The position numbers were made by a program, and so were the translations under genes. A stretch of 62,938 nt of DNA, counting the filler, from Lenisia limosa (lineage: Eukaryota > Protista > Breviatea), in NCBI GenBank assembly GCA_001655205.1. It is 8 parts of 8 records of this genome, joined end to end, with 100 filler letters (N's around TTAATTAATTAA, not from the genome) between each part and the next. Parts side by side here need not be neighbours in the genome. Positions count along the whole stretch, not along the records: positions 7,333 to 36,464 come from LPNZ01002761.1; 7 more parts are not named here. The stretch is one strand, 5' to 3'. The first letter of the stretch is position 1. Each line of letters starts with the position of its first letter. A model generated the notes under the pieces. The model was not told the origin of the DNA. It ran no database searches and was given only the letters and a program-made list of their open reading frames with translations. This document shows positions 10,905 through 36,464 of the stretch, one piece after another.

Positions 10905-11144
10905 CTCAAAGAAAGTGATGCTCATTCCAAGCTGACCTCTGTTGACATTATACTCTTTAACTCTTCAGTTATTATATCGTCTTATTATTGCTAATATATA
11001 TTGTTTGTTACCGCTCTTTTAGGATCAGCTGAATCCCAGAATGGAAATTCGGAGTGTCACTATTATCCCATTTGGGGTACAGATTATGGATTTTGGATTA
11101 ACTTGACGTGAGTTCATTTATTTAATGCTCGGTTGAGATTACCT

Positions 11145-11288
11145 CTCTACGGCGCATGGACTTGGGATTCCCTATGATATGGGAGTTTCATAAATATCTT
11201 CAAATTTCCAGAAGTTTCCATGGATTTCCCATGTAAAATTTGGAAATTCCAACGTTTTCACAAGAATCCCAAGTCCGTTGTGCTAAAT
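11145..11288. mobile_element. MITE family 2 (~135 bp, TIR c(a/t)ctacggcgcat(g/c)gacttgggattc); other copies 16226-16364, ~23420-23515, 24831-24964
   Basis: Shared internal sequence (ttcccatgtaaaat.tgg.a.ttccaacgttttcacaagaatcccaagtc) and inverted termini; the 24831 copy begins CACTAC and ends GTAGTG. Confidence 0.75.
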
Positions 11289-12058: not shown

Positions 12059-15000
12059 ATGTTACCTTCCAAGTTTTGGGTGTTTCTCTTGTTCATCGTT
12101 CCTGCAGTTTTTGGTAAGCCCAAGTGGATTCGTACAGTTGTATTCGAGTGTTCAAATGGTAATATCTAGTAATTACCTCTGGTACAAATGTAATCGATGT
12201 TGAATTATAATCTCACATCCCCTCATATGATAATAAATAATTGACGGATAAGTCTCAATAATACTCTACACTCGGGATTAACTCGCCTGTTTTCTCCATT
12301 TATTATTTCAACTCGAAATTCAGATATGATAGGAAGTAAAATATCACCTTGGTGAAATATGTTAATATGACAAAATCAGTAAATTATGTTTTGAAAACAT
12401 AATTGTGTAAAAGTTAATGAGCAACATTGATATAAATTGATCACCATTATATAAATAATATCAATTAAAGTGTGTGAATATATTAAAAAACGCTCTGGAA
12501 ACTTTTTTTGCTTTTGCGTGGTGATTAACTTGTTATTTCAAAGAGATCAAGTTGTATAAATAATAATAATTATTGCTTCACTTTCGGTTTATCGAGATGT
12601 ATCCAGAGATCATTCGTTTTTTGAACCAATTGAAAAGTTTTAAACCTATTAAACCAGATGCGAGTCCTATATAACCATGATATATAACCTACATAGCTTA
12701 TCTACTATTTTCAAACTCTGATATTATATGTTTTGCACACTTACATTTTAGCGCAGTGCAAGATTGTGGTAGAAGATGGTGTCAAGACTTGTCAAGGTAG
12801 TGGAGTGTTTAATCCTCAGTTATATGCTTTGAGTACATTAATATATCAATTAAGTTATTCAGGTCCATGCAGAGCAAGAACCGACAAATGTTTGCCTACA
12901 TTTGATGACGTTGGAGACTTAATCGAATGCAAATGCGCAGATCCTGTATGTAAGGGTGTGAGAGTATTGTAATCTGAGTGTCAGAAAAACTTGTGTTGAC
13001 GCATTTCCACAAGTTATATGATTATATGACAAACTTTCAAAGATAACATGATTGTCATCCCGAGTGTATCAGGGTATCATTGAGACTTGTTGGTCATATA
13101 TAATACGAGTTGATATGAGGCATCATCAAATAACTAGTGTTTCAAAAAGTGGTATTATTTAATATACTTATGGTATACAGTAACCAAATCGGTTAAGACT
13201 TACCGGGTCACTGAATATATTCATTCAAGTCGTGGGAATAAAATGATCAGCCGGATAGAACCTTTTATTATTCTTATCTCTCTTTCAATATACAAGAATA
13301 CACATAATTTCAACAGGGCGTGGACTGCTATCCAGACTGGGGTAAGGATACTGGATGGTCGTGCAAGGGTGACTGTGACACTGATACTTTGGATTGCGTT
13401 CCCGCTTTCGGTACAAAAGTCTTGGATAATGGACAGGTTTGCTTTTTCAGTAACGTCTTTTTAAAACTAGGTTCATATATCAATACTCTGCTGTTGAATG
13501 TACACTAAAGAAATCACCATTTAATACTTAGTAAATAGTACTCATGCAATTTTAGCTGGTTTAGGGACAGTTTACTAGAGCTACAGGCATTAATTATAAA
13601 TTCCTTCCTTCATGTTGATGAAATTGTATAATTTTATATATAGCTTATATGTATAGTCAAAGCTCCGGACATCATTCAAAATTCCCGGACACATCAAAAC
13701 TCCCGGACAGCTTGAGTTTTTCCCTACAAAATCACCATAAACCACCCAAAAACCCTATTTCCCTTTTGTTTTCGAAAGTAATCTCAATCTTAATTAAAGC
13801 ATGAAACCCCAATTTAACATATTGTCGGGTCAAAACCAAATTAAGTCCCTGAGCTCTCTGTTAATGGTCCAAATACTGTCAAAAACAAGCAAAAACCGTT
13901 ATAAGGCCACATTCAAGGAATAAATGGCAACTACCCTTGTAGACAGTGCTATTTTGAGCAATTTTCTCTCAAAATTCACCATTACATAGCCAAAGTAAAG
14001 TGGAACCCGGAACCAAATACTCCGAGGGGTGCAAATTTTTGTTTCTTAACACTTAAAGAGGGTAAGATTCAGAAAAAAATCCTGTGAAAAGGCAAAAGGG
14101 GGACCCCCGGGAGACCAAATTCACGGATTTTTGACGTTTGCTCAAAATTGAAAAAAAAAGTTAGGGAACATTAGGAGGACCATTTCTCTTTGTATCTGTC
14201 GAAACAGATTTTCAAAAAACACTAGCAATGGCCTATACAAGGCATTAACTTCAAGCTGTCCGGGAGTTTTGATGTGTCCGGGAATTTTGAATGGTGTCCG
14301 GAGCTTTGAGGACCCACATATATATTATATCCCTTAACATTAAAGATACAGAAGACTGTTTATTCATCAACACAATCTTGCAGATTATTTCCTTCAACAC
14401 AAATAACAAATAATATTTCAGATTATTTCCTTCTTCAAAGGATGCGAGTGCACAGATGCACACTGCAGAATGACAGAGGCTGATAACGGTCAACTGTTCT
14501 GCACAGGTCACTGTCCACTATGTGGGAAGCTAGGAATTATATTGTTTTATGATAACTTTCTTAGGTGTTTTTCATTCTTGGAGGTTGTTATAAATAATTA
14601 TGTTCTTAGTGATTACTTCCTTTATCCTCTAAGGTTTTTGATAATTATCATCTTGTGATACTATTTATTTATGTTGATAACTTTCTTTGTCCTAACGGTG
14701 AAATGATTTTGTGAACAATATTTCCATAAGCATGATGGTGTGGATGGCTTTGGCCAGATACAACCTTTTTTGTTTGTCATCTTTATCCACGAAATGAGTA
14801 TGATATAACTATCTAGCAACTCCTACGAACAGGCAATTCTGTGAGCCGATTTTCTCAGAAGGACATCTGAAGGAATGCAAATGCCAAGGAGGTCGGTGGC
14901 ATTGATTGTATTTAAAGCATCTCTGCATTCAAATCTTCGTTTTCATATTAAATATTTTTTAAAAAGCATGTATTCAACTTTTTTTAGCATTTTAAATGTA

Positions 15001-17471
15001 ATTGTCCAACGCAATCAGAGGAAAATCAACAATTTCACGAATTTCTGAAAGTTTAAACATTTTATTGGAGAAATAGATTTTCTTGTGCCTAGTTTTTTTT
15101 AAAAACAAGTCAAACTAATAAATATATCGATATATCATATATCTCACCCCCGACCCCATGCCCCATGGGTGTATATATTGTGTNNNNNNNNNNNNNNNNN
15201 NNNNNNNNNNNNNNNNNNNNNNNNNNNNNNNNNNNCTCCCTAGTGCACACCTGTATTGAAAAAAACTAATGTTAAGCACACTTCTGCATCTAAAACTATT
15301 TTTTGTCGAATATATAATTTCAACCATTTGTCATTCAAACCATTGGTTTGAGAAAACCTTTAATTGAACCTTTAATATGATTAAATATGATCCAGGCACG
15401 TGCTTTGCTCATTATTCTCCGATGCCGTTTGGATGGCATTGCGACCTTCCGGATTGCCCTGATCCGGTGAGGGGATTTGAAACTTACGTATTGTTGATCG
15501 AGGTTTCTTTCCTATCTAAATTGTCATATTAGTGTGGAATTAAGCTTAGACTGAATCGATTGATGGTATTAAACTTGTAGATTGTTTACTCACAATTAAT
15601 ATTACTCGATGCTTCAAAATTGACTCCATTGAGGGTAAATGTTTCATTTTTCAAGTTATACAAAATATAAATATTTATATATAGCTCTATGTAGGTACAA
15701 CTAGAATTAATGTTGTCGCATGTTTCTGGAGTTGAATTATCACACTAATACTTTCGACATTTTGACGGCTTCGGTCAGTTCCCTCTTGACATCATGTATA
15801 ACGGGATTGTTCCACCAAATTATTTATATCGCTTGTACTTGATACTATAACAATCAGCCTATTGTATTCAATGATCACCAAAATATTAGATATCGATATG
15901 TATTTCTAGTTTAAATGTTAAAATAATTGTATTAATTACAGTTTTTAGAATCAGAATTGCACTGCGTTGTACTATGAGAGGGAAGGTAAAAAGTTCTTCA
16001 ATGGCTGTGACTGCATTGATAAACCTGATCGTAAGTTGACTTGATTACAATAGAATCTAGATAATAATAAGAAATTCGTTTATTTCTTAGCATGCCGTAT
16101 CGAGAAGAATGCCTGTACTGGAACCTGCCCTAATCCAGATGACGTGAGCTGGAAATTTGATAAAGATGTGATTGTGGAATGTATTAGAACTGGACTCGGT
16201 GGTGTTAGCTGAATATTCCTCGGACTACTACGGCGCATGGACTTAGGATTTCCTTGTATGACATGACAAATTTCTTCGAATTTCTATCAAATTTCATGGG
16301 ATTCCCATGTCAAATATGGTAGTTCCAACGTTTTCAAAAGTATCCCAAGTCGATGTGCCATGTATATGTTTTGTCCAATTAATCCGAAAGGACATATTAA
16401 TCAAAATTCTCAATACTCCCCAAGGTAAATGTAGATTTTTATAATTCACAAAACACTGAAATATCAACAAACAAGGAACCGACCAACACGGTGATTCATT
16501 CATGAAAATCTATTTCAAACAATCACTAAAATCACAAATTTAGCATTGTGTTGGTCACTTTGTGAACAACAGACTTGCTCATTGCACATGTTGCGAATGC
16601 GAACCACCTATTGGCCCGTGTGAAAGTTGGGCTTGGTTCTTAAATATGAACAGGATACTTGACCTATTAGTATTTTGTTTTCCCTTGTAATTTGGTTATG
16701 ATTTATCACAGTCTGTGTATGAAATATATGTATGATATAGTATATACATGTAATATACTATATAGATTTTTGAAAATTGTTAAGAATTGGAAGAAATATT
16801 TGTTTTGGATCAGGAGAGAATTGACCAGTCCGAACACAGTTATAAATAGTTCATTGAGATTTGCGTTGTTTTGCTTAGCAATATTCAAGAATCATGTATT
16901 TTACACCAAATCATATAATTTGTGAAGCTAATATGAGACTACCTCTCTTACAAGCATGATGTTGTTGACTTCTTCGGTTTGAGTTATTTTCCGTCTCATT
17001 TTTTCCTAGTTTGTCACCTCGAATTCTATAACAACCGTCCACTTTGTGTTGGTGAATGCCCCCCTGGAACCGACTGTAACCTTGTGAAGGCGAACGACAC
17101 AATGACTTGTCGTTGTGGAGGTAAGCCTCCATCAGATATCAGTGCTGTAATCCAAGCTGATTGAAAAGTGTAATAAACTTTCCTACCACATGATTGCACA
17201 TTTAGAGTGATTGTGTTATTTTGATTTGTTGATATTATAATAATGCTTTACTCGGTCTAAAAATATATTTTAGTATACTATGATATAAATACCGTTGATT
17301 TATCGAGAAATTCTGTCATTTTCTGGATCGGAGTAAACACATATCATAGCCATATGAATATGATAATCTAAATTCTTGGTAATATTTTTTGTTTTTCCCC
17401 TGCCATTTTTTGATACATTTTTCAATTTCTTACTCTTTCCAGCAATTTTCGACACTCCTGACGGAAATTAA
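12059..17471 (+). CDS. Secreted Cys-rich 6-Cys-module protein, paralog 2, complete, 12 exons, 301 aa
   Basis: Exons 12059-12113, 12752-12796, 12863-12945, 13317-13436, 14422-14521, 14817-14891, 15396-15466, 15949-16030, 16091-16143, 16544-16625, 17010-17120, 17443-17471 (906 nt). Signal peptide MLPSKFWVFLLFIVPAVFA, then six modules from QCKIVVEDGVKTCQGPCRARTDKCLPTFDDVGDLIECKC to CHLEFYNNRPLCVGECPPGTDCNLVKANDTMTCRC, ending GAIFDTPDGN*. Confidence 0.92.
13654..14309. mobile_element. Non-autonomous TIR element family 3 (~650 bp, ~55 bp TIRs with internal ccggac subrepeats); other copies ~47664-48183 and 58414-58656 (left part only)
   Basis: Left caaagctccggacatcattcaaaattcccggacacatcaaaactcccggacagcttga; the right end is its reverse complement. 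Internal sequence is near-identical among the three copies. Confidence 0.85.
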
Positions 17472-18248: not shown

Positions 18249-21200
18249 ATGTTTACTGCCAAGTTCTGGGTTTTCCTTTTGTTCATCATTCCAACAGTTT
18301 TTTGTAAGTGTGGATTTGGAATCTCGTTTATTCATTAACTAAATTCTCACTAAATCCTTCATTTGTAAAATTATGAAATATTACTATTTGAATGTGAAAT
18401 ACCTTCACGTGTATTGTTGACATTTGTGGTTGTTTATTTGAGGTAGAGGCTCAGACTTAGTAGTATATCGTTAAGTCATCACATTACTATGTGGCATCAA
18501 CATTTCTTCTTATATATAGTATTATTTTTGTCTAATATATAAAATAAATATTTAAGCTACAAATATAGTACATATTTTCACTAATCTTGAAGTTAATTAT
18601 AAACATTTTAACTAATCCCACAGCCGCATGTAAACTGTTTAATAAAAAAGGAGTTAAATTCTGTCAAGGTACGTAAAAAGGTTTAAGCATAAAGAATATT
18701 TTGACAATTTCCGTTTCGTAGTAAAACTGAAAACACAACACTATTTAGAATAGCATATAATATGATTCTCTATAAGATTTATCACGTATCCTCCTCATAA
18801 GAAATCACATTTTCTGGAGGTGAAATGTGAACTTTGAGTGGGTAGTATGTAATAATTAAAAATAAGAGAAATGTAAAAACTGTCTGGGTAACAATCTGTG
18901 TCTTGATTTGTTGCAATGATTGTAAAGCGGCACTTTCAATGAAAAACCACTGAATGTCTGTAGGAGGCTGTCCTGGAGGTAATGGCAAATGTGTACCTAT
19001 CTTCGATAATGTTGGCGATGTTCGAAGCTGTATATGCACGGCACCGGTGAGTGGAGTAAGAATGGGAAATACATAAATATAAACGTGGGATAGGAAATAA
19101 ACATAGTGCATATTACAACAAAAAAAGAAAAAACTAAAATAGAGAGAGAATGAGTGTGAACTCTTATGTTGTATATTCTAAGGCGCATTGACTTCAAACA
19201 CTCGTATTGTTTGAATATTACAACTTGTATAAAATGTAGAATTCTACATATGGAAATAAGTCTAAATTATATTATACTATGTACATAATAACCAGATCAG
19301 CAAATAATTGCAAATACTGGTGGTACTTAGAGCAAAGTTTTACTTAGGCAATCATAGTTGTTGCTATTCAAGTGAATCAAGAGCATCTATGGGATGAGCG
19401 ATTTTGTTTTTCCTGTAGCATTTTGTATGTATTCATATTTCATTATATGTTTCAGTTTCTTTGTATCAAAAGAGTCCCTAAAACTGACGCTCCGCAGGGT
19501 GTCGTGTGCTACCCATCCTTCAAGCAAAACTCTGGGTGGTCGTGCATGGGTGATTGTGGCAGCCCAAGCAGGGATTGTGAACCAGAATTTGGCAAGCGCT
19601 TTCTGCCAAATGGAGAGGTATGTTCGTGTTTTGTCGATTACTATTATCAATCCAATATCTCTATATGCGTGATGGTGATGACGGCTTTGGCCAGATACAT
19701 TCTTATTTTTTATTTCCCATTGCCATATATATATATGGATAGGTGCTGTAATATATTTCAAATTATAATGTATTTGAATTGGAGTATTTTGATTGTTTCA
19801 GATTACTAGTAAATACGAAATGGAGATGTACTGGTTTATTTGTCTAGATAACATACTATTTTGCTTCCCAATGTCCCACATATATAATATTCTTGATAAA
19901 TAATAATACTGTATTCTTGATAAGTCCTCTAACAAAATCGATACTCAACCGATCTTGTTCGGACTGCAAGGAAGTTTTAATTATTATTCTTGAAATGGAC
20001 AGGTCCCTCTCTTTTGTTTATCTTATGACAATTCAGGTTATCTCTTTCTTCAAGGGGTGTAAATGTACAAACGCAGAGTGTAAAATGACTCAAGCCGATA
20101 ACGGACAAAAGATTTGTGCTGGACACTGTCCAAATTGTGAGTATTTAGATAACTTTGGCTTATTTTGTTCTACAAATAATGAGGTTTGACAAGTGAGAAC
20201 GTCCAGTCGCGAACTTGTTTTTCGCGAATGTTCTTAACTAGCTCTTTCCTATGGTAGAAAAAGCAGTGGAAATATCGATATACTAATTGACGATTATTGA
20301 ATAATTCCTTAATTACTCGTAGTACGAAAGCCTTATTGATAACCCTCTGCTGCCAAGAACCTAATATTTTAGCAAGTCCCAGTAATACCGAATTCTGCGA
20401 GCCCATTTTCTCCAAAGGTCAATTGAGGGACTGCAAATGCCAAGGCGGTAGGAGGGATTAGACTGAGCGTAGCTGATTTGATATCAAGATGACATACAAA
20501 TGTAATATTTAGAGTACACCGAACTCTACTTCAACTTAATTCTTGTATAATTTTGGATATACATGTACGTGAAACATTTTTTCTCTTATAACCTAAAACT
20601 TGAGGAGATAATGAAACTAGTATCCAACATGTTGCATTGTGATGCGAAACATTCGAGTGAATTTACTAAGAACATACCAGAATCAGAAAAGGACCCCTGT
20701 AATTCCATTCCTAAACTCCTAACTATGACTACATACTTTGAAAGGGTTATGGTCCTCACTTTGGTTCCAAAATAGCAGTGTTATCGAGGATTTATCGATA
20801 CATTTAGTCGTGTTTCGAACTGATATAAAGCCCTTTTTATATGTTTTGTTAAACGCCCTCACTATTTAGGCACGTGCTTTGCGCACTATTCTCCGCTGCC
20901 TTTTGGATGGCATTGTGACTTGCAAGATTGTAACAATGACGTTTGCTTTTAGTCTTTATCTTGCTTTTAATGAAAAATAGAAACCTTAGTTTTTTATTTT
21001 ATTCTATAAAAATGACAAATTCAAAAACACTTGTTTATATCCAAATGGAAAATCACTCTTAATCAATATAACTTGTAATTGCTCCAGAGTTTATCTAATT
21101 GAAATACTCTTGTTATGGACTGAATTGAATGTAAGCAAATATTTAATTGTTTAGAAGCAGGAGTGCAAAGAGCTATACTACGTCAAAGATGGGAAAAGAG

Positions 21201-24200
21201 TCTTCAACGGCTGTGATTGTATTGACAAACCCAATAGTGAGAAAAATGAATATGTGTTACAATGTTGAGATTCATAATATAATTGGGCTAATATCTATAA
21301 TTCAAACAAAATTCTCTTACTGTGTCAGACGCAGTGTGAAGAAATAGAAGACTTAATTTACTCTATAGATTGTCGAAAAGAAAACAATATGTGTGTTGGA
21401 CAGTGCCCAAATTGTAGGTGATGAATGCATCACAGTTCCAATGGTTTCATCAAGGTTACAAAAGTAATAGCCAATGCTAACTAATCCTAAAATTTGTTAA
21501 TTAACTTATCGTAGTGAACTTTTCACGGACCAATAAATAATTCTCCAAGCTTTAACACAATTTCTATACATTTAAATTTACTTTTGCTTTCTATATTATA
21601 ATTATTAATCATAGTATATTGTTTCACATTTTATATAATTTGTATAATATATAATGTTGTTATAATGTCACGCTAATATGATCAATACATTAATGTGATA
21701 TTAAATGCTGTTTATTACAATAATTTTAGCAAGCCCCAGAAATCCTCAGTATTGTGAGGCCATTTTCTCCAATGGTCAACTACGTGACTGCCAATGCCAG
21801 GGCGGTAATGTGATATTTTTGAAAGTAGTTTATTTGATTAGTTCCAACGTTTTATTCAAATACTCGTATAAGGGCTTGATTCAGTGTTTTATTTAAACAG
21901 ATATAGGTTCCAATTTTGTAACATCATCTCACATTTTGGATCATTTTCACATACTACTCCTTGAATTATCGAAGGGATATGATACCTCATATACATAAAA
22001 ATGACAATTCCAACAAGTCACAATGATACTCTGATATATTCATTCCTTAACTTGGTCCATCATGTTGACTTGAATACCAGTCACGGTATATCGTTTTATA
22101 TCAATAGAAGATGTGGGCTAACATTTGCATGCAACATACTTGAACTAATTATGATGTCACACAAAATGCACATATCTAGAACTTTTTTGAGAACTCAAGG
22201 AATCCCTAATCACCACTTTAGGAACCTGCTTTGCCCACTACTCTAAGGAGTTGTCGGGATGGCATTGTGACTTACCGGAATGCCCAAACGGAGTATGTTA
22301 ACTTTTCAGACGAGTTTTTATTGTCATCTCAAGGCACCATCGATTTGTAATTCCCATGTGTAATTTGGTTATCCAATACATTTCTTTTGATTTTGATATC
22401 GATATATTATTACGATTGTCTTGTAAATTATGGTAATCCACCTTTTCATAAGAACACCAAGTCAAATCACGATAACGATGTTGTAGGAACAGGTTTGTAA
22501 AGAACAGTACCATGTGAAGAACGGAAAGAGGCTATTCAATGGCTGTGATTGTATTGACAAACCCAATCGTAAGTAAAAGGGAATATTTTTGGTGAAATAA
22601 ATATGTGGCCAATCTTGAAAATATTGTAAAAATGAATTTGGGTAATATTGCTATAATATACATATATTTTTATTAGAAGGCATAAGTCCCCGTGTGAGTG
22701 CGACCGCAAGTATGAGTGTGATAACAGAGCTGCCTACTTGTGACGCAAAATTCCTCTTTCGGCAAAAAATCAATAACAATTCCTAAAAAACGAGAATTTT
22801 GTATGATATATAATCATTTATATATTTTGAATTTTTATTTGTTCTTCTCTACATTCTAAAGGATCAACTTGATTTACAACTTAGCTTGTCGAAAAGAAAA
22901 CAATATGTGTGTTGGACAATGCCCAAATTGTAAGCGAGACAAATTTCAAAGTAATTACTAGATTATTCATTGGAAATAATTTCTTTAAAAATAATTTCCA
23001 CCCATCCCACACATCATATTTGGGGGGGGGGAGTTGATGGGGTTATTTGAATAAATATTGACATCAACTATTTTCAATTATGTTAAATTTCGCAATAGAA
23101 TTGACTAGGCATGGTTTGAACCTTGTCATTTACAACTTCTTCTGGACTTGATTATTCATAAACTTCCCTTCTTTATTTTTACAATTTAAATTTTGTGACA
23201 GTTTGTAGCAACTTTACTTACGTCAAAAAGAAGTACCAAATTTGGTTGTCAAACTAAGCTCTAATGCAGATTTTTCACATCATTCAATTTGTAGCAAGCC
23301 CCAGCAATCCCCAATTTTGTGAACCCATTTTCTCCGATGGCCAACTTCGGGACTGCAAGTGCCAGGGCGGTAGGCGGAATTAGTTTTGAGATAAATGATG
23401 TACATTTCACATTATTAGGGAAGCAAATAAACTTCTTTAAATTTCCATAAGATTCCCATGTAAAATATGGGAATTCCATTGTTTCACAAGAATCTTAAGT
23501 CAATGTGTGCCACAGTACTTTTTCACAAATGCGTGTTTTCTTTTGTTGATCGTGTCGGCACTTAACGGCAACTGTCTATACTGTACCTTTCAAGCTGAGA
23601 ATATTTTATGTATAAAGGCTTTTCCCTGAGCTTTAAATTATCATGAATGTAAAACTCCAATTGATGTTGTTAGGTACTTGTATTGCCCATTACTCTCAGA
23701 AGCTTGGATGGCATTGCGACTTGCCTAATTGCCCTAAGGAGGTTTGTTTATTCTATTTGAGAATAAGATAATACTTCACAGGTTGTTTTTGTAATCATGT
23801 AATTATTTATATTGCACTTCGTATTAGTGTGATAAAATATGATAACATTACAATCAACATCTAAATTTAACGATGTTAACCTACAGTGAATTATAGTCAC
23901 TAAATATTCGCAAGCATTTTACTAATATATGTACATGTATATGTACTCAACATTACGATTTTGTAAAAACGATGTAGATTCATAAGTCTATTTCATATTG
24001 TAGAACAAGGAATGTAAAGAGCTATTTCACGTGAAGAACGGGAAGAGGCTTTTCAATGGCTGTGACTGTATTGACAAACCCAATCGTAAGTAAAAGGAAA
24101 TATTATTTTGGTGAAATAGTTATGTGGCCAAGCTTGAAAATTTTATGAAAAGAGAGTTTGTGTTATATTGCTTTAATTCATATTAATATTACACTTGGGC

Positions 24201-27200
24201 ATATTATTTAAACATTTTGAATATTTATTTTGTTCTTTTCTAAATTTTAAATGTTATGTCAAGTTGATTTACAACTTAGTTTGTCGAAAAGAAAACAATA
24301 TGTGTGTTGGACAATGCCCGAATTGTAAGCGCGAAATATTTCCAATAGCACACCTCCCTCCAACCCCAGCAACATAATTGTGGCCGGTGGAAGGGGATGG
24401 TAGTTGACGGGGTTACTTGTATATATAGTGACCGGGATAAGTTTTTGTCCTAATTTCCTTGGTAAATCAGAGAGCAAATCGGTTAAGAACTATCCCGGTC
24501 ACTGTATATTGACATCATTTATTCTCCATTTATTTAAATTTCGCCATGGATCCCACTAATGATACCTTGTCTCATCTGGAACTTCTGGACTTGATTATAC
24601 ATAAAAACCCCATTAACTGAAATATGGGTGTGGGTGTTGGCAACTTTACTTATGTCAAAATGAAGTACAACAGCTCTAATGCAGATTTTCTATTTACACA
24701 AAAATTATTCTATTTCTAGCAAGCCCCAGCAATCTCCAATATTGTGAGCCCATTTTCTCCGATGGTCAACTTCGAGACTGCAAATGCCAGGGCGGTAAGG
24801 GGAATTACTTTGGGGGATTTTGTGGTTGAACACTACTTGGGCTTCTTGTGAAAATGTTGGTGTTCCCATATATTACAAGGAGATTCCATGAAATTTTATC
24901 AAAATTTGAGAAAATTCACGGGTTTTCCAAAAAAACGGGAATCCCAAGTCGATGCGCCGTAGTGAAGAGACTGTGGATATGGATATAATAAATATGAAGT
25001 AGTGGTGGTGAGTTTTCTTTGCTTTCTTACAAATGTCTGTTTTCTTTAGTTTACCGTGTAAGTATAACTGCACTTTGATACTTCAGCTTTCAATCAGAGA
25101 ATATCTTGTGTAATGTAAAACTCAAAGCTCTTGACAAAATCTTGAAATGAGTTACAGAAACAATCACCAATATTAGGTACTTGTATTGCCAATTACTCTC
25201 AGAAGCTTGGATGGCATTGCGACCTGCCTAATTGCCCTATGGAGGTTTGTTCATTCTGTTTGAGAATAAGATAATATTTCACAGGTTGTTTTTGAAACCA
25301 TGTAATTATTTATATTGCATTTCGTATTGTCTGATGATATTGTACACCATTACAATCAACGATATTCACTTTTGGTGAATTATTGTCACTAAATATTCGC
25401 AAAATCGTATAACCTATGTGAAGTCATAAGTAATCTACTCTTAATATTTCTCTACAAATTTCATGTTATATAAAATATAATAAAACATACATGTACATAC
25501 ATGTATATACCCAGCTCTATTTCATAGTGTAGAACCAGGAATGTAAAGAGTTATTTCACGTGAAGAACGGGAAGAGGCTTTTCAATGGCTGTGATTGTAT
25601 TGACAAACCCAGTCGTAGGCAAACTAAAGGAGAAGAATATTAATTCATGGGTTTAAAATACCTCTGAACTATTGCGCACTTCAAGTGATTCTTATGCTAC
25701 AATCTTAACAAAAGAAATGAAGGATATCTGTTAAATTTGGAAACTATAATACTGTTATAAATTCTCATGTTGATATGATAAACAAATTCGTTGTGGAAAA
25801 ACTATTAACGATTCGTTTAAAAGAACTTCTATGATTTTAATTGATAAAACTGAAATTATAACATGATTTATTTTAGCTTGTCGAAAAGAAAACAACATCT
25901 GTGTTGGAACTTGCCCTGATTCTGATGAGGTAAAATGGGATATATTTCCTTATTTAGTTTGTATTTTATCTGTTTAGAATTGCATTGGGCACTATCTTAA
26001 TAGCAAGCTCGACGTATGCAGATGTTGCGAATGTGATCCCCCTCCAGAACCGGGTTTGTGGCAAGTATTTATCAGAATGGGACTGTTTTTAGGGCTTTAT
26101 TTCAGTGAAAAAATATCAATGAAATAGCAGTATTGGTCGAAATGTATCGTTAACTCAGTCACTTTTGTAACTATGGAGACGCTTGAATAATAAATAATAC
26201 TATGAGACACAAATGTCTATGACAAAAGGTGCATGCTGGGGAGGCACGCAGAAAGCTGTGTGCACAGAGTTGTAAAGCAAATGCTTGGGTGAATTAATAT
26301 TATTTTATAATCCAATATCTCTTATTAGCGTGATGATTTGGACGGCTTTGGCCAGATACATCCTTATTTGTTATTTCTCATTGCTGTATATTATAAAAGT
26401 TAAAGTCCATAATTTATCCATTTATGATAACACAACAGAATATTGCCCCCAAAATATCATATGATACTCATAATTCAACTGGAAGACTTTCCTCAAACTT
26501 ATATTTTTTTCTCCTAAATCAGCCATTTACAAAAATACATAAACCAAAACTTCAGAAGAATCCCCTCCATTTCAATTTGTATTCCATATCTTTCCCTTAA
26601 ATCAACCATTTATGTTTCCCCTAATTCAACCAGAAGATTGTCATCTTGAGTTCGCCAATAGGGTACCGAAATGTGTTGGGCAGTGCCCAGGTACATCCAG
26701 ATGCAGACTCCTTTCTGGAACGGCCTTGTTTTGCGCGTGTACTGGTTAGTGTATTTAAGAAAATAGTAATGTTTGTGTCATATGGAGCGCTTCCATCTGG
26801 CCTGGATTATAATTTATACCTATAAAATATTGATATTTATTGAAGGTATTTCAATATTCAGTTGTATTTTGTCATTGACCCGAAGCGGTAATCGTGGTGT
26901 ATTTAACAGATGAAATTTCTTAATGTATCATTAAGATTCCAATCAGGACATTCCCTCCACCATATTCAATACATGTGGTCTGTGAGATGATTTCGTGTAA
27001 TTATTTAAAACATTAATTTTGAAGGAAACAAATATAACAAGACAAATTTACAACCATGGTACTAATTATTTTGATAGAATTATAGGATACCTTCCAATTA
27101 GTTTTATGAAATCAATTTTGAAATTTAAGTGTCTAAAATAGAGTTTCTTTGACTGTATTTCTCACTTCAAGTTTAATTGAATATTTCAATTAATTGCACA

Positions 27201-28284: not shown

Positions 28285-31200
28285 ATGTTATTTTCCAAGT
28301 TTTGGGTTCTCCTATTGTTCATCGTGCCTGCTGTTCTGTGTTAGCCGGGAGTTGCTTCACATTTTTTAAAATGTCAATTAGTATTATTTTACTTGTATTT
28401 TGGAATCAAAACAAAATTTAAACTCTGTTGGAGAAGGATAACTTTTGGTTCGAAAAGACGTGTAAAGTCATGAAATTTTTCAAATATACTCGAAATACAT
28501 TATCGATTATTCTTCCATCATTGTGTACCCCTATTACAACCATGCAATCCTTTTCCCAATCATCTATTCTGAGCGTCACTTTCGGTTTTAAAAAAGACTG
28601 AATTCTCGATAAACCCTCTATAAATATCGATATTTTACAGGTGTTTCGGAACAGAAAGTGAAGCTCTAATCCATTCACTTTCTAGCGGCATGTAAACTGG
28701 TCAACAAGGATGGGGTCAAGTCTTGCCAAGGTAAGGGTTTCAGTTTCAGAGTCAATTAATGACTTTTTGTGAAAAGAGAGATAACATACACATTAGAAAT
28801 TTTGACAAATAAATACACATGGATACCATAAAAACATAAATAGGGCTTCATTTCGGGTCGAAAAAAGACGGGATTTCTCGATAAATCTTCGAAAGTTATC
28901 GATATTTTACCTATTTTTCCCCCTACACATAGCCATACTATCAAGCGTTTCGGTTTCACAGCTTGATTGAGTAGGTACATGTCCTGGCCGAAATGACAAA
29001 TGTCTACCCACTTTTGGCAGTACCGGAGATCTGATCGAATGCAAATGCGCTGACCCGGTCGGTGGTGTTTGATATCAGGGAGCGGTAGCTGGGACTCTCT
29101 GATTATATATAGCAATGAAAAATGAAAAATAAAGATGTATCTGGCCGAAGCCATCCACAACATCACGCTTATAAGAGATATTGAATTATAGTATAATATT
29201 AATTCACCCAATTATTTGCCTTTAAAATCTGTGCACACAGCTTTCTATGTGCCACTCTGTGATTGTTTGTTGGAGTTGACTGTATATTTGTTCTCAAACA
29301 CACCTCGAGACAAGCGATCATTTTAACTTTGACATTATTGTGTATTTGATTTTTAAACAAGAAAATAATAAAAAATAAATATGAAAGAAATTTTTTAGAG
29401 GAATAGCAAGGTGTGTGCCAGGAAGTATATTTGGGGAACTTTGAAAGGAGAAGGCTGTCTACTGGAATTGATTGACGGTTTCGATTGCATATTAATTGAT
29501 TATTGAATAATACTAATACTGCTTAAAATAACTTATTCTAGGGTGTGGATTGTTACCCAGCATGGAGATCCCAGACCGGGTGGACATGCAAGGGTGATTG
29601 CGACAGTGCCTCTTTAGATTGCGTCCCGGCTTTTGGCCAATACACCGACTCTAATGGACAGGTTTGATTTTGAGACTTGTTGTGCAGGGCTTCACTGGTT
29701 CAAAAGTGACCGGTAAAGTATCGATAAGTTTCGAGGATTTATCGAGAAATTCAGTCTTTTTCCAACCAAAGTGAGGGCCTACTTATGTGGCTTGTCTGAG
29801 ATTTTTGAAGCAATGTTAGGCGAGTTTTTGGCGATGGTTTTGGGTTAAGGGAGAGGCGTGTCCCTACGTATGTATTGGAACAATCAAAGTTCAAATTACC
29901 TCCTTTCAATGCTAGTCTAAATTCCTTCCGTCAGGGGTAGTCCGTATTCGCTCTTTTAACAATGACATTAAAGCGGGAGTCCCACTAAATTTGTGTAACC
30001 TAGTTCATAGATTTGGGGCCTATACAATTTGACCAATATTACAATTTGACCAATATTTCAGGAAAATAAATTCAAAACGACAAAATAATGTTTTCCTATT
30101 CTCTTTGATTTTGTCTCAGAAAAGTGTGCATGTTTCTTGTAATATGCCATGGAAAAGCGGGAGAAATTCCAAAAAATATTGTTTTCGCAGTTTAATTGGA
30201 CTTTAACAATTTCATCATCAGAATTGAATATTCTAGGTTCTCTCCTTCTTCAATGGCTGTGAATGTTCAGACTCGCAATGCAAAATGGGCGAGGCAGACA
30301 ATGGTCAAAAGTTCTGTGTCGGTCGCTGTCCAAACTGTAGGTGCTATTTGCAACCTTTTCAGTGATTTTTTCTACTTTGAAATTTTTGGGATTTTTTATT
30401 CTACGGCTAAAATGATTTTTTAAAGTGCTATTTGTCTATAATCAGGACTATTGTAGTTAAATTTTGTAGCCAGTCCCACTAATCCCGAATTCTGTGAGCC
30501 CATTTTCGCTGATGGCAATCTCCGGGACTGCCAATGCCAAGACGGTTAGTAGACATATTATCTTCATATGCGGTACATATAATTTTGTTAAATTGGCACA
30601 AATAAGACGACTGTGGATATTACAAAAACTAACTTGTAATTTACAATTGAAACTATTGATCGGTGCCACTAGCAGGCTAATTTCTAATTTCAATTGGTAC
30701 ATACCAGAAATATAATTAATTTGAAAATTTGCCATTTTACATGATATATGTAATAGTTCTCTTTATATGGACAATGATATAATACTTTGTAATCAGCTGC
30801 CATTTACACACTACTGTTGCTTTTCACAACAACACTTCGAGTGATTTAACCACAATGCATCGAATGTTTGGATGTAGTATATCGTACAATTCATATTATG
30901 AGGAATCTGATAAATTTGAAAAAGTAACATAAAAGACTGGGTACATGAAAAATCACTTTAAAATTAATTGTACCAAGTCAATGCTCTAATTAGGGCTCCA
31001 GTTTGAAAAAAGACCGATATAATATTGGTAGTTAACTAGTATTTTTCGAAGTGGCGCTAATGCATTTAGGACCCTGCTTTGCCCATTATTCGCCACAGCC
31101 GTTTGGATGGCATTGTGACCTGCCTGATTGCCCCGATCCAGTTGGTGGGGATTGTATTTCACAGTTGGTAGGGATTTCGCTATTTTGAGTTGGTGGAAGT

Positions 31201-33938: not shown

Positions 33939-36232
33939 TTATTCGTAGAAATGGAAAACCTTCTCGTCCTTTTCGCACACCTTCTTGTACCTACATCAAT
34001 TAACGGTATTGCGCAAATTTAACACCTATAATAAGTATACCCCCCCCCCCCTCTGGCATAAATCACATTGATGCTTAATGGAGATTTTAAGGAATTTCTC
34101 TTCAAACCCCATCAGATCACTGTAAGATAGTCAAAGCTGTTGTTCAACTAAATAAGAGAAGCAGAGAGGAAGAGAGAGAGGACTTAATACTGCTCTACCT
34201 TATTTTCTACCCTTAACTATCTCTTTTTCTTCATCTACACAAGCTGGCACTGGTTAAGAGAAAAAAAAAAAAAAACAGCAGGAAAATTTATCAATTTGGT
34301 CTTCATCGTATACAATTAAGAAAAATTAAGCAGACTCACTTTTAATGTCATATCACATCGATATTATTAATCCAAAACAAGAAACTGTCATATCATAGTA
34401 TCATACCTTAACCCCCCCTCCCCATATTTTTGGGATCGTATGCAAGCCCTACTTTCCCTATCCACAGCTACAGAAAGCACCTTCAACATCTCTTTAGATT
34501 TGAAGATGGACACCCCTCCCCCCCAAGTGTCTGTGACTGTAATTGCTTCGAATTAGCACTCTGTTTTGCAACCAACTTTCAGATCAAGAGTGATTCAGAG
34601 TAACCACAGACAGTTTAACCCCCCTCACGCCACGTCCATATCGGCAGGGATGATTACGTAACGGTTCTTACGGACNNNNNNNNNNNNNNNNNNNNNNNNN
34701 NNNNNNNNNNNNNNNNNNNNNNNNNNNNNNNNNNNNNNNNNNNNNNNNNNNNNNNNNNNNNNNNNNNNNNNNNNNNNNNNNNNNNNNNNNNNATATTGAT
34801 TTTTGTATGAAAAAAATAAAATAGGGGGGCGGGGTGTTTAGATAAGAATATATATCGATATAAATATAAAGGAAATATGATACTATATATCATAATACAT
34901 GTATATCATATAATATGTATGTATGTATGTTGGGGGAGGGTGAATAAAATTGCTGAAATACCTGCGACACTGAGCATATCGGGCAAGCCACTGTCGTTGT
35001 AGGTAAATGATGGAATTATGATTGTCAGTGTATGTCATATCAATATAATTATACATCATAGCATTGCTCAGACACACATAGTGTATGTCATATCAATATA
35101 TTAAACATCACATTAAAGACTTGCCAAGAAAACAAACATACCCATCATATAACAGCCAGAGAAAACATACCATAGTCTTCCAAGTCAATTTCGTCTGAAA
35201 GGTTCATTTTGGCGGTACACACCTGGAACACCAGGCGCTTCTGCCGTCTAAGGGGGTAATGAGGGAGGGAAAGAGTGTGTAAAATAAAAAAAAGAGAGAG
35301 AGAGAGAGAGAAATAATAATAAAAATAATAATAATCACAAATCAACTCAGTTGGCTGACAACACACGAGGGTTGATACTAACAAAACAAACAAAGCCAGA
35401 GGGGCGAGGGGGGGGGGGCANNNNNNNNNNNNNNNNNNNNNNNNNNNNNNNNNNNNNNNNNNNNNNNNNNNNNNNNNNNNNNNNNNNNNNNNNNNNNNNN
35501 NNNNNNNNNNNNNNNNNNNNNNNNNNNNNNNNNNNNNNNNNNNNNNNNNTCTTCCAGGCCTATGGGGTCAGACAAAATATTTGAAGAAGTAGACTGCAGT
35601 ATAACTACTGACTGACACGTGTTTCTGCGGTATTTATTGAGAGATTTGGTCTTTTTTGGGACCACAGGAAAGCCTCATTGTTGATGTAGCAAAAGCCTTG
35701 AAGAAGGTTGAATTATTCTCTATTTAACTTTTTGGCATGGAATGAAAACACACGTATCACTTAATGAGAGAGAATAAAGAAAAAGGTAGAAGAAATGTAC
35801 CAAGTGTGAGAAAGCAATTGAAGGAGCTTAAAGAGCATCATCAATACAACACTCATCAAAAATACCTCAAGCGATCAGCAATAAACACAACACCATCATC
35901 AAGTTGTTTAACTAGTAATTATCTACACCAAACCCCACCATCACCAACTCACACCTTATTATCACCAAACTCAAACCTTATTATCATCAACTCAAACCTT
36001 ATTATCATCAACTCAAACCTTATTATCATCAACTCAAACCTCATCATCAACATCAACAAGTTGTTTAATTTGTAACCACAAACCTCATTTAACCATCATC
36101 AAAATCCACAACCAACCTCATTAACGCGGCATCAAGGGTATCGGGGCGGTTGGTAGCCATAATGACCTTGACGTTCACACTCGGGTCAAAGCCGTCCATT
36201 TGATTAAGGAGCTCAATAAGAACGCGTTGAAC
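33939..36232 (-). CDS. RPT3: 26S proteasome AAA-ATPase subunit RPT3 (PSMC4), 3' part; gaps hide some exons
   Basis: Exons 36232-36117 [39 protein letters not shown], 35559-35550 PGR, 35247-35171 [25 protein letters not shown], micro-exon 34990-34962, ..34675-34629 [16 protein letters not shown], 33990-33939 [23 protein letters not shown] and the FY-ending C-terminus fit RPT3. Confidence 0.9.
35946..36050. repeat. 21 bp tandem repeat (aactcaaaccttattatcatc) x~5 in an RPT3 intron
   Basis: Read directly from the sequence. Confidence 0.85.
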
Positions 36233-36385
36233 CTGGAGGGGGTGTAAATTGGACAATTTATGAAACAAAAAAAATCCCAAAATCAACTCTGCTGGCTGAC
36301 AACACACACGGGTTGGTAACAACAAAACACAAAAAGCCAGGCCAGTCGCTTCTGGAGCACAATATCCCATAACTCCAGCGTATGT
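36233..36385 (-). repeat. Intron 3'-end repeat; other copies 2858-2973(-), 35340-35400(-), 37522-37575(-), 44588-44769(+), 48695-48762(+), 49185-49255(+)
   Basis: Conserved core aagcgactggcc..gctttgtttgttttgttgttatcaaccctcgtgtgttgtcagccaacagagttgattttggg, followed by a T tract and usually a C-rich tract leading to the acceptor AG. Confidence 0.85.
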
Positions 36386-36464
36386 TGACAGTAGAAAATA
36401 TGCGAAACAAAATTCCAGCAAAAATAAACACCACCAATCCAATTATTAAAAAAAAAAAAAAAAA

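Follow-up and report, generated by a model that had tools for sequence, protein, structure and literature searches.

We analyzed paralog 3, one of four tandem, intron-rich paralogs on the + strand of a Lenisia limosa contig, in which a block of whole exons is repeated head to tail. All positions are numbered along the whole stretch of DNA analyzed (62,938 nucleotides (nt) from assembly GCA_001655205.1, hereafter the window), and the locus lies in its LPNZ01002761.1 piece (7333-36464, ~34% G+C). Using a motif scan and exon-wise tblastn, we found exon sizes and borders to be alike across the paralogs, the common set comprising a signal-peptide exon (55 nt), U1 (45 nt), U2 (83 nt), X (120 nt), a 100-nt exon, A (75 nt), B (71 nt), C (82 nt), a 53-nt exon, Y (76 nt) and a last exon Z; paralog 1 is truncated at the left edge of the piece. 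Paralog 3 has 23 exons (18249-26749, + strand), all 23 with AG/GT borders and none with an internal stop, and walking through them with the carried bases gave 563 codons with a single terminal stop, or 562 residues including 74 cysteines. From this exon structure, paralog 3 appears to be an intact gene for a 562-residue, presumably secreted protein of twelve six-cysteine modules, next to paralogs of six modules and ~290 residues each. Secretion is predicted because the first exon is conserved and hydrophobic.

The repeated unit consists of exons A, B, C and D, the last being an additional exon of 45 nt. Copy 1 occupies 20373-21413 (A1 20373-20447, B1 20870-20940, C1 21155-21236, D1 21369-21413; 273 coding nt), copy 2 occupies 21730-22929 (A2 21730-21804, B2 22222-22292, C2 22487-22568, D2 22885-22929; 273 coding nt) and copy 3 occupies 23295-24324 (A3 23295-23369, B3 23674-23741, a hybrid C3 24004-24085, D3 24280-24324; 270 coding nt), all on the + strand. 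A fourth A-B-C triplet on the same strand (24720-25614: A4 24720-24794, B4 25177-25244, C4 25533-25614) has 92-96% exon identity to copy 3 and is followed by the 53-nt exon in place of D. These head-to-tail units of the same whole exons (A-B-C four times, D three times) recur with a period of 1.33-1.6 kb, a repetition beyond chance (blastn E-values from 1e-9 to 1e-100). Phases are 1-1 for A, 1-0 for B, 0-1 for C and 1-1 for D, so that phase 1 stands at both ends of the unit. Extra cassettes are present in paralog 3 alone among the four paralogs, and the three cassettes added six modules to it.

An initial annotation of this locus had described a block of 75+71/68+82+45 nt occurring four times, which holds for the 75+71/68+82 triplet but not for the 45-nt exon, of which there are three. 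The rest of its description of the cassette agrees with our reconstruction: the six extra modules (12 versus 6) are counted as three added two-module cassettes; the 45-nt exon is unique to paralog 3, being absent from the other three paralogs and from everywhere else in the piece; the re-derived exons yield units that start and end in phase 1 with the totals given above; and the amplification is frame-preserving and paralog-specific, with one open frame here and no extra cassettes in the other paralogs.

The remaining exons, all on the + strand, belong to the common set; the cysteines of a module, called a knot for reasons given below, are written Cys1 to Cys6, as distinct from exons C1 to C4. 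Exon 1 (18249-18303, 55 nt) carries the start codon and signal peptide and ends in phase 1; its hydrophobic N-terminus, followed by a GT donor, is conserved in paralogs 2 and 4, and the signal-peptide exon as such in paralogs 2-4. Exon U1 (18624-18668, 45 nt, phase 1-1, with AG/GT borders and tblastn matches to paralogs 2 and 4) encodes Cys1 and Cys2-x-G of knot 1; it has the size and phases of D but ends after C-x-G and splits CxGxC itself, a register other than that of D. Exon U2 (18964-19046, 83 nt, phase 1-0) encodes Cys3-P, Cys4 and Cys5-x-Cys6 of knot 1, exon X (19498-19617, 120 nt, phase 0-0, aligned with 50% identity to paralogs 2 and 4) knot 2 up to Cys4, with CMGDC as its CxGxC, and the 100-nt exon (20037-20136, phase 0-1, identical in size and borders across the four paralogs) the CxC of knot 2 and Cys1 to CxGxC-P-N of knot 3. 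Downstream of the cassettes lie the ancestral 53-nt exon (25877-25929, phase 1-0, same size in all four paralogs), exon Y (25978-26053, 76 nt, phase 0-1, tblastn matches in all four paralogs), which encodes Cys4 and Cys5-x-Cys6 of knot 5 with two extra cysteines, and the last exon Z (26634-26749, 116 nt with the stop), which encodes one full module of the form C-x10-CxGxC-x5-C-x10-CxC in the alignment and the AlphaFold model described below. The intron between the 53-nt exon and Y (25930-25977) measures 48 nt in paralog 3 as against ~220-400 nt in paralogs 1, 2 and 4. Several conserved donors (20941, 23742, 25245 and 26054, and those of exon X in paralogs 2 and 4) have GTTTG in place of GTRAG, perhaps as a trait of splicing signals in this host.

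Age of the cassette copies and the hybrid exon C3

To date the copies relative to each other, we summed Nei-Gojobori counts over the in-frame parts of A, B and C for all copy pairs. The ratio of nonsynonymous to synonymous substitutions (dN/dS) was 0.03-0.17 across all pairs. The proportion of synonymous differences (pS) was 0.72-0.79 between copy 1 and the others, which is saturated, 0.52-0.58 between copy 2 and copies 3 and 4, and 0.17 between copies 3 and 4 (dS ~0.2); for the older copies, synonymous divergence is saturated or near a dS of 1. Exons differ by 6-27% between copies, and the youngest units, those of copies 3 and 4, are 73% identical overall and separated by many insertions and deletions. 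The cassette copies are old and have been held by strong purifying selection; with the dN/dS range above, their age means that they are neither a mis-assembly nor decaying pseudo-exons. Because the copies have diverged to this extent (saturated or near-1 dS, and a dS of ~0.2 at 73% identity even in the youngest pair), copy-number variation of the old copies between strains or individuals is unlikely, while unequal exchange between copies 3 and 4 is possible today.

We then built a maximum-likelihood tree on the A, B and C alignment columns of the paralog 3 copies and paralogs 1, 2 and 4. Its topology is c1,(c2,(c3,c4)), with supports of 91 (copy 2 as sister to copies 3 and 4) and 87, and it sets the cassettes apart from paralogs 1, 2 and 4 with a support of 70. 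Copy 1 is the oldest copy. The monophyly of the four cassettes, at a support of only 70 and with a grouping of copy 1 with paralog 4 not rejected (approximately unbiased test, p = 0.11), is the point in this tree that counts against the expansion path proposed below.

The introns delimit the most recent unit. Scoring intron pairs as z-values against shuffles, we obtained z = 19 for C2-D2 and C3-D3, z = 32 for D2-A3 and D3-A4, z = 21 for A3-B3 and A4-B4, and z = 51 for B3-C3 and B4-C4. By the same score, no similarity was found between the B2-C2 and B3-C3 introns (z = 0.9) or between the C3-D3 intron and the one from C4 to the 53-nt exon (z = -1.4), and no copy 1 intron aligned to the introns of other copies. 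The duplicated unit therefore spans exon C to exon C. Consistent with this, C3 equals C4 at every informative site through position 48, and its upstream intron is also C4-like; at position 80 it equals C2, and its downstream intron is also C2-like. The switch point lies between positions 48 and 80, in a 31-nt stretch encoding FNGCDCIDKP that is near-identical in the three exons. C3 is a hybrid and the direct footprint of unequal homologous exchange between cassette copies. The initial annotation had proposed that further crossovers amplified the cassette and that introns of the later copies, as opposed to those of copy 1, can still be aligned; hybrid exon C3 demonstrates recombination between copies, and the z-values of 19-51 were indeed confined to later pairs.

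Two features of these introns were recorded alongside. The D3-A4 intron contains a transposon-like insertion (24421-24509) with 19-nt inverted ends, 95% complementary and 51 nt apart; it is private, with no counterpart in the homologous D2-A3 intron. In the C2-D2 intron, ~120 nt (22664-22784) are missing from the homologous C3-D3 intron; this stretch is richer in G+C, and one of its frames reads CECDRKYECDN.

Origin of the 45-nt exon D

We aligned D with the 53-nt and 100-nt exons by anchoring on the CxGxCP motif. Over its first 32 nt, D departs from the 53-nt exon at 2-3 sites and from the 100-nt exon at 14-15; over its last 13 nt, the counts are 5 and 2-3, respectively, an uneven spread that is nominally significant (Fisher p = 0.015-0.034). 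Taking the other paralogs as outgroups for the last 13-15 nt of D, a chimera requires 2 later changes as compared with ~5-6 by descent from the 53-nt exon. From these counts, D is probably a chimera, with its 5' 32 nt derived from the 53-nt exon and its 3' end from the 100-nt exon.

The mosaic structure claimed in the initial annotation is thus borne out by the mismatch counts, which are suggestive and fall short of proof. Its mechanism, unequal crossover at the shared CxGxCP, stands as far as the mosaic goes but not as a classical homologous crossover: the patch common to the 53-nt and 100-nt exons is ~28 nt long and 68% identical, and nowhere has more than 4-5 identical bases in a row. A patch this short and imperfect suggests that the first event would have been a microhomology-mediated or homeologous in-register exchange between ancient internal repeats.

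The alternative is that D arose by an intron-to-intron tandem duplication of the whole 53-nt exon followed by the gain of a new donor; under this descent, a GT donor 8 nt upstream (ATTCT to ATTGT) would have changed the end phase from 0 to 1 and restored the frame. Several observations favor it and count against the chimera. The test for the latter rests on 13 exonic bases, to which the 100-nt-like signal is limited, and reaches nominal significance only. D has TGC for the cysteine in its 3' part, the codon of all four 53-nt exons and not the TGT of all four 100-nt exons, and paralogs 1 and 2 likewise have an asparagine (AAT) following CP in their 53-nt exons. The introns flanking D have diverged too far to tell the two origins apart and show no consistent similarity to those of either source exon; two isolated p-values of 0.008 in this intron-flank test were discarded as noise among 24 tests. 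On the other side, 53-nt descent has to accommodate the additional changes in the last 13-15 nt and the uneven distribution of mismatches, and the frame of its first duplication product would have stayed broken until the new donor appeared. We consider this route unlikely, and prefer the chimeric origin.

The three D exons themselves do not diverge like their cassettes. D1, D2 and D3 (21369-21413, 22885-22929 and 24280-24324) are 93-96% identical, the other exons of their cassettes 73-80%; D1 and D2 differ at 2 of 45 sites, as compared with 27% for A, B and C of copies 1 and 2 (Fisher p = 0.0004). Between the paralogous genes the 53-nt exon diverges by 17-32%, an ordinary rate, so the likeness of the D exons does not reflect a general constraint on this exon type. 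The similarity also continues for ~18 nt into the sequence preceding each D exon and the 53-nt exon (25877). The simplest reading is that the D exons evolve in concert, through gene conversion or through exchanges that recur at D and at the 53-nt exon. As a consequence, the present D may no longer show the junction as first formed, so that a fine mapping of the first exchange carries less weight.

Probable cystine-knot character of the modules and related systems

The motifs CxGxC and CxC together are the ring signature of the growth-factor cystine-knot fold. We found this framework in Z (C-x10-CxGxC-x5-C-x10-CxC) and also in U1+U2, in the 100-nt exon with A, in D+A and in the 53-nt exon with Y; the B+C modules carry a Cx4C variant of the ring motif, and exon X has C[MK]GDC. 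The ancestral six modules are U1+U2, X with the start of the 100-nt exon, the rest of the 100-nt exon with A, B+C, the 53-nt exon with Y, and Z; most modules are split over two exons, and Z holds a complete one. In paralog 3, the twelve modules account for 72 of the 74 cysteines.

We modeled module Z (38 residues) with AlphaFold using the four paralogs as input, which gave two beta hairpins at a predicted local distance difference test score (pLDDT) of 92. Comparing this model with 48,161 representative solved chains (VIA-align), the best 24 matches were all cystine-knot growth factors or antagonists, headed by PDGF-B (Z 4.0, root-mean-square deviation (rmsd) 2.3 angstrom over 37 residues) and followed by NBL1, TGF-beta2, thyrotropin, VEGF-B, gremlin, norrin, sclerostin and GDNF. 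The knot superpositions covered 37 of 38 residues with an rmsd of 2.0-3.0 angstrom and 22-30% identity. Motif and model point to growth-factor-type cystine knots as the likely fold of the modules. Several results weigh against this assignment: the structural matches are weak (Z 2.4-4.0), low scores being expected for a module of only 38 residues, although the matches are consistent with one another; Foldseek with the Z model against the PDB gave no match at an E-value below 1; Pfam, searched exon by exon with E-values up to 10, gave no family, a weak negative with exons this short; and sequence profile searches of the PDB returned nothing significant, a weak CPxGxxC resemblance to an eggshell-membrane protein being among their results.

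Seen against this framework, the cassette A-B-C-D would comprise the back half of one knot, a whole knot and the front half of the next, with the phase-1 cassette border (CPN / SPS) falling between Cys3 and Cys4 of a knot. Since the two knots joined by the first exchange would be of one subtype, with the exchange point in their ring motif, the hybrid product would be expected to fold.

Across the collections searched, exon-sized queries retrieved no relatives of the module family, a weak negative given the query size. An HMMER profile of exon X searched exhaustively against 1.84 billion representatives had as its sole match a low-complexity repeat protein aligned at 'LDCVPA', which we rejected as spurious; as the search did not return the products of the genome itself, these are missing from that collection. 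No match was found for an exon-C profile in metagenome contigs or for exon X in an ESM Atlas feature search; the same search with exon Z retrieved nothing beyond small disulfide-rich peptides of a generic kind (0.85), which are a lead at best, and an Atlas shape search with the 38-residue Z model was uninformative. Neither the HMMER search nor the metagenome scans turned up a second assembly of the locus. A literature search returned no described tandem mini-knot family apart from one lead, Pinhead (Pnhd), a secreted chordate protein with multiple cystine-knot domains (PMC8188501). By its literature description, the likeness lies in secretion and in several knot motifs per chain (PMC8188501). 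We noticed no admp-like neighbour in the piece, and no search was aimed at admp.

Among growth-factor knots, PDGF/VEGF, TGF-beta, DAN/gremlin/sclerostin, glycoprotein hormones and norrin resemble the modules in their six cysteines and in the CxGxC and CxC motifs; the modules here differ in being ~38-48 residues long with very short loops, in standing 6 or 12 in tandem per chain, and in giving no Pfam or PDB sequence match and Z scores of at most 4.0. As for the amplification, the haptoglobin Hp2 allele and the two-exon kringle IV-2 cassette of apolipoprotein(a) are intragenic tandem exon-cassette duplications by unequal exchange. Paralog 3 shares with them head-to-tail blocks of whole exons, phase-symmetric borders, lengthening by whole modules and the origin of later copies by recombination, but its junctions lie in exons (hybrid C3, probable hybrid D) and not in introns, and its copies are old and diverged and not near-identical. 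Patthy's rule concerns the exon shuffling of phase 1-1 modules; the paralog 3 cassette likewise has a phase-1 intron on either side, and copies can be added or lost with the frame intact, but its phase-1 border falls off the domain border, between Cys3 and Cys4. In Dscam-type clusters, tandemly duplicated exons are spliced in a mutually exclusive manner. Such clusters and paralog 3 both contain tandem homologous exon units of the same phase in one gene; here, however, the unit is four exons long, and including all copies gives a sensible repeat protein.

Expansion path, alternatives and significance

We propose as the likely history that an intact gene for a twelve-knot secreted protein has grown by at least three successive in-register unequal exchanges with exonic junctions. 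In the first exchange, the 53-nt exon, which forms the front of knot 5, would have recombined inside CxGxC with the 100-nt exon, which holds the front of knot 3, creating the D hybrid and at once an in-frame duplication of two knots. A second duplication would have separated copy 2 from the progenitor of copies 3 and 4. The third and youngest recombined in the FNGCDCIDKP stretch of the 82-nt exon and left the C3 hybrid, and all copies have since been kept by purifying selection. Constitutive inclusion of the cassettes, yielding a longer, multivalent secreted knot array, appears to be the most likely outcome.

Two other accounts of the extra cassettes were weighed against this history. The cassettes could be used alternatively, giving isoforms of 6, 8, 10 and 12 modules, so that length would vary by splicing in place of a fixed longer protein. 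Phase 1 is shared by the donors of D1-D3, the donor of the 100-nt exon and every A acceptor, which would keep any such skip in frame, and tandemly duplicated exons are frequently alternatively spliced; strong purifying selection on every copy fits constitutive use at least equally, and we hold alternative use to be the less probable option. We noticed neither competing RNA structures nor odd splice sites, and no search was aimed at them. It is very improbable that the extra cassettes were created by the assembly, or that they stem from a recent expansion, still unstable and differing between individuals. The assembly is a draft with N gaps elsewhere, but there is no N between 18.2 and 26.8 kb, where the longest exact internal repeat is 43 nt; the exon divergence between copies, the insertions, deletions and private transposon-like insertion that separate the youngest units, and the synonymous saturation of the oldest copy all argue against both.

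Further repeats and one neighbouring frame were noted in the piece. A dispersed repeat of ~95-150 nt with 81-86% identity lies in the introns and flanks of paralogs 2, 3 and 4 (14716-14774, 19637-19735, 26243-26395 and, in reverse, 29102-29253); its conserved core had no match in metagenome contigs. A second dispersed repeat (11144-11283, 16227-16358, 23430-23507 and, in reverse, 24835-24965) occurs between genes as well as in the A3-B3 and A4-B4 introns, where its two copies have opposite orientations. In the paralog 2 intron from X to the 100-nt exon there is a 70-nt inverted repeat (13646-13715 and 14251-14320), 91% complementary with its arms 535 nt apart. An open frame on the - strand (36089-36442) is cut by the right edge of the piece and reads like an exon of a 26S proteasome AAA ATPase, which we take to be Rpt1/PSMC2-like.

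The event is an ordinary internal exon-cassette amplification in what is apparently an undescribed family of secreted proteins made of tandem mini cystine-knot-like modules, and it leaves the general principle unchanged, internal exon duplication by unequal exchange being textbook knowledge. New in this analysis are the knot signature of the modules, the cassette border inside a knot and the concerted D exons. A wider reading, of which we are doubtful, is that this family of mini knots has its module number tuned by in-register exchanges within the ring motif and may bind extracellular ligands as DAN-family antagonists or Pinhead do, with paralog 3 perhaps giving a ladder of 6-, 8-, 10- and 12-knot isoforms by cassette skipping. 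Paralog 3 shows in a well-preserved natural case how a modular secreted protein can lengthen, and the junctions of three successive duplications can still be read or inferred in it. Conserved exon sequence, where these junctions lie, is all the homology that the old repeats still share. The amplified unit is out of register with the structural domain, so that phase symmetry, and not a domain border, was what amplification required. If the family is real and expressed, it may merit characterization.

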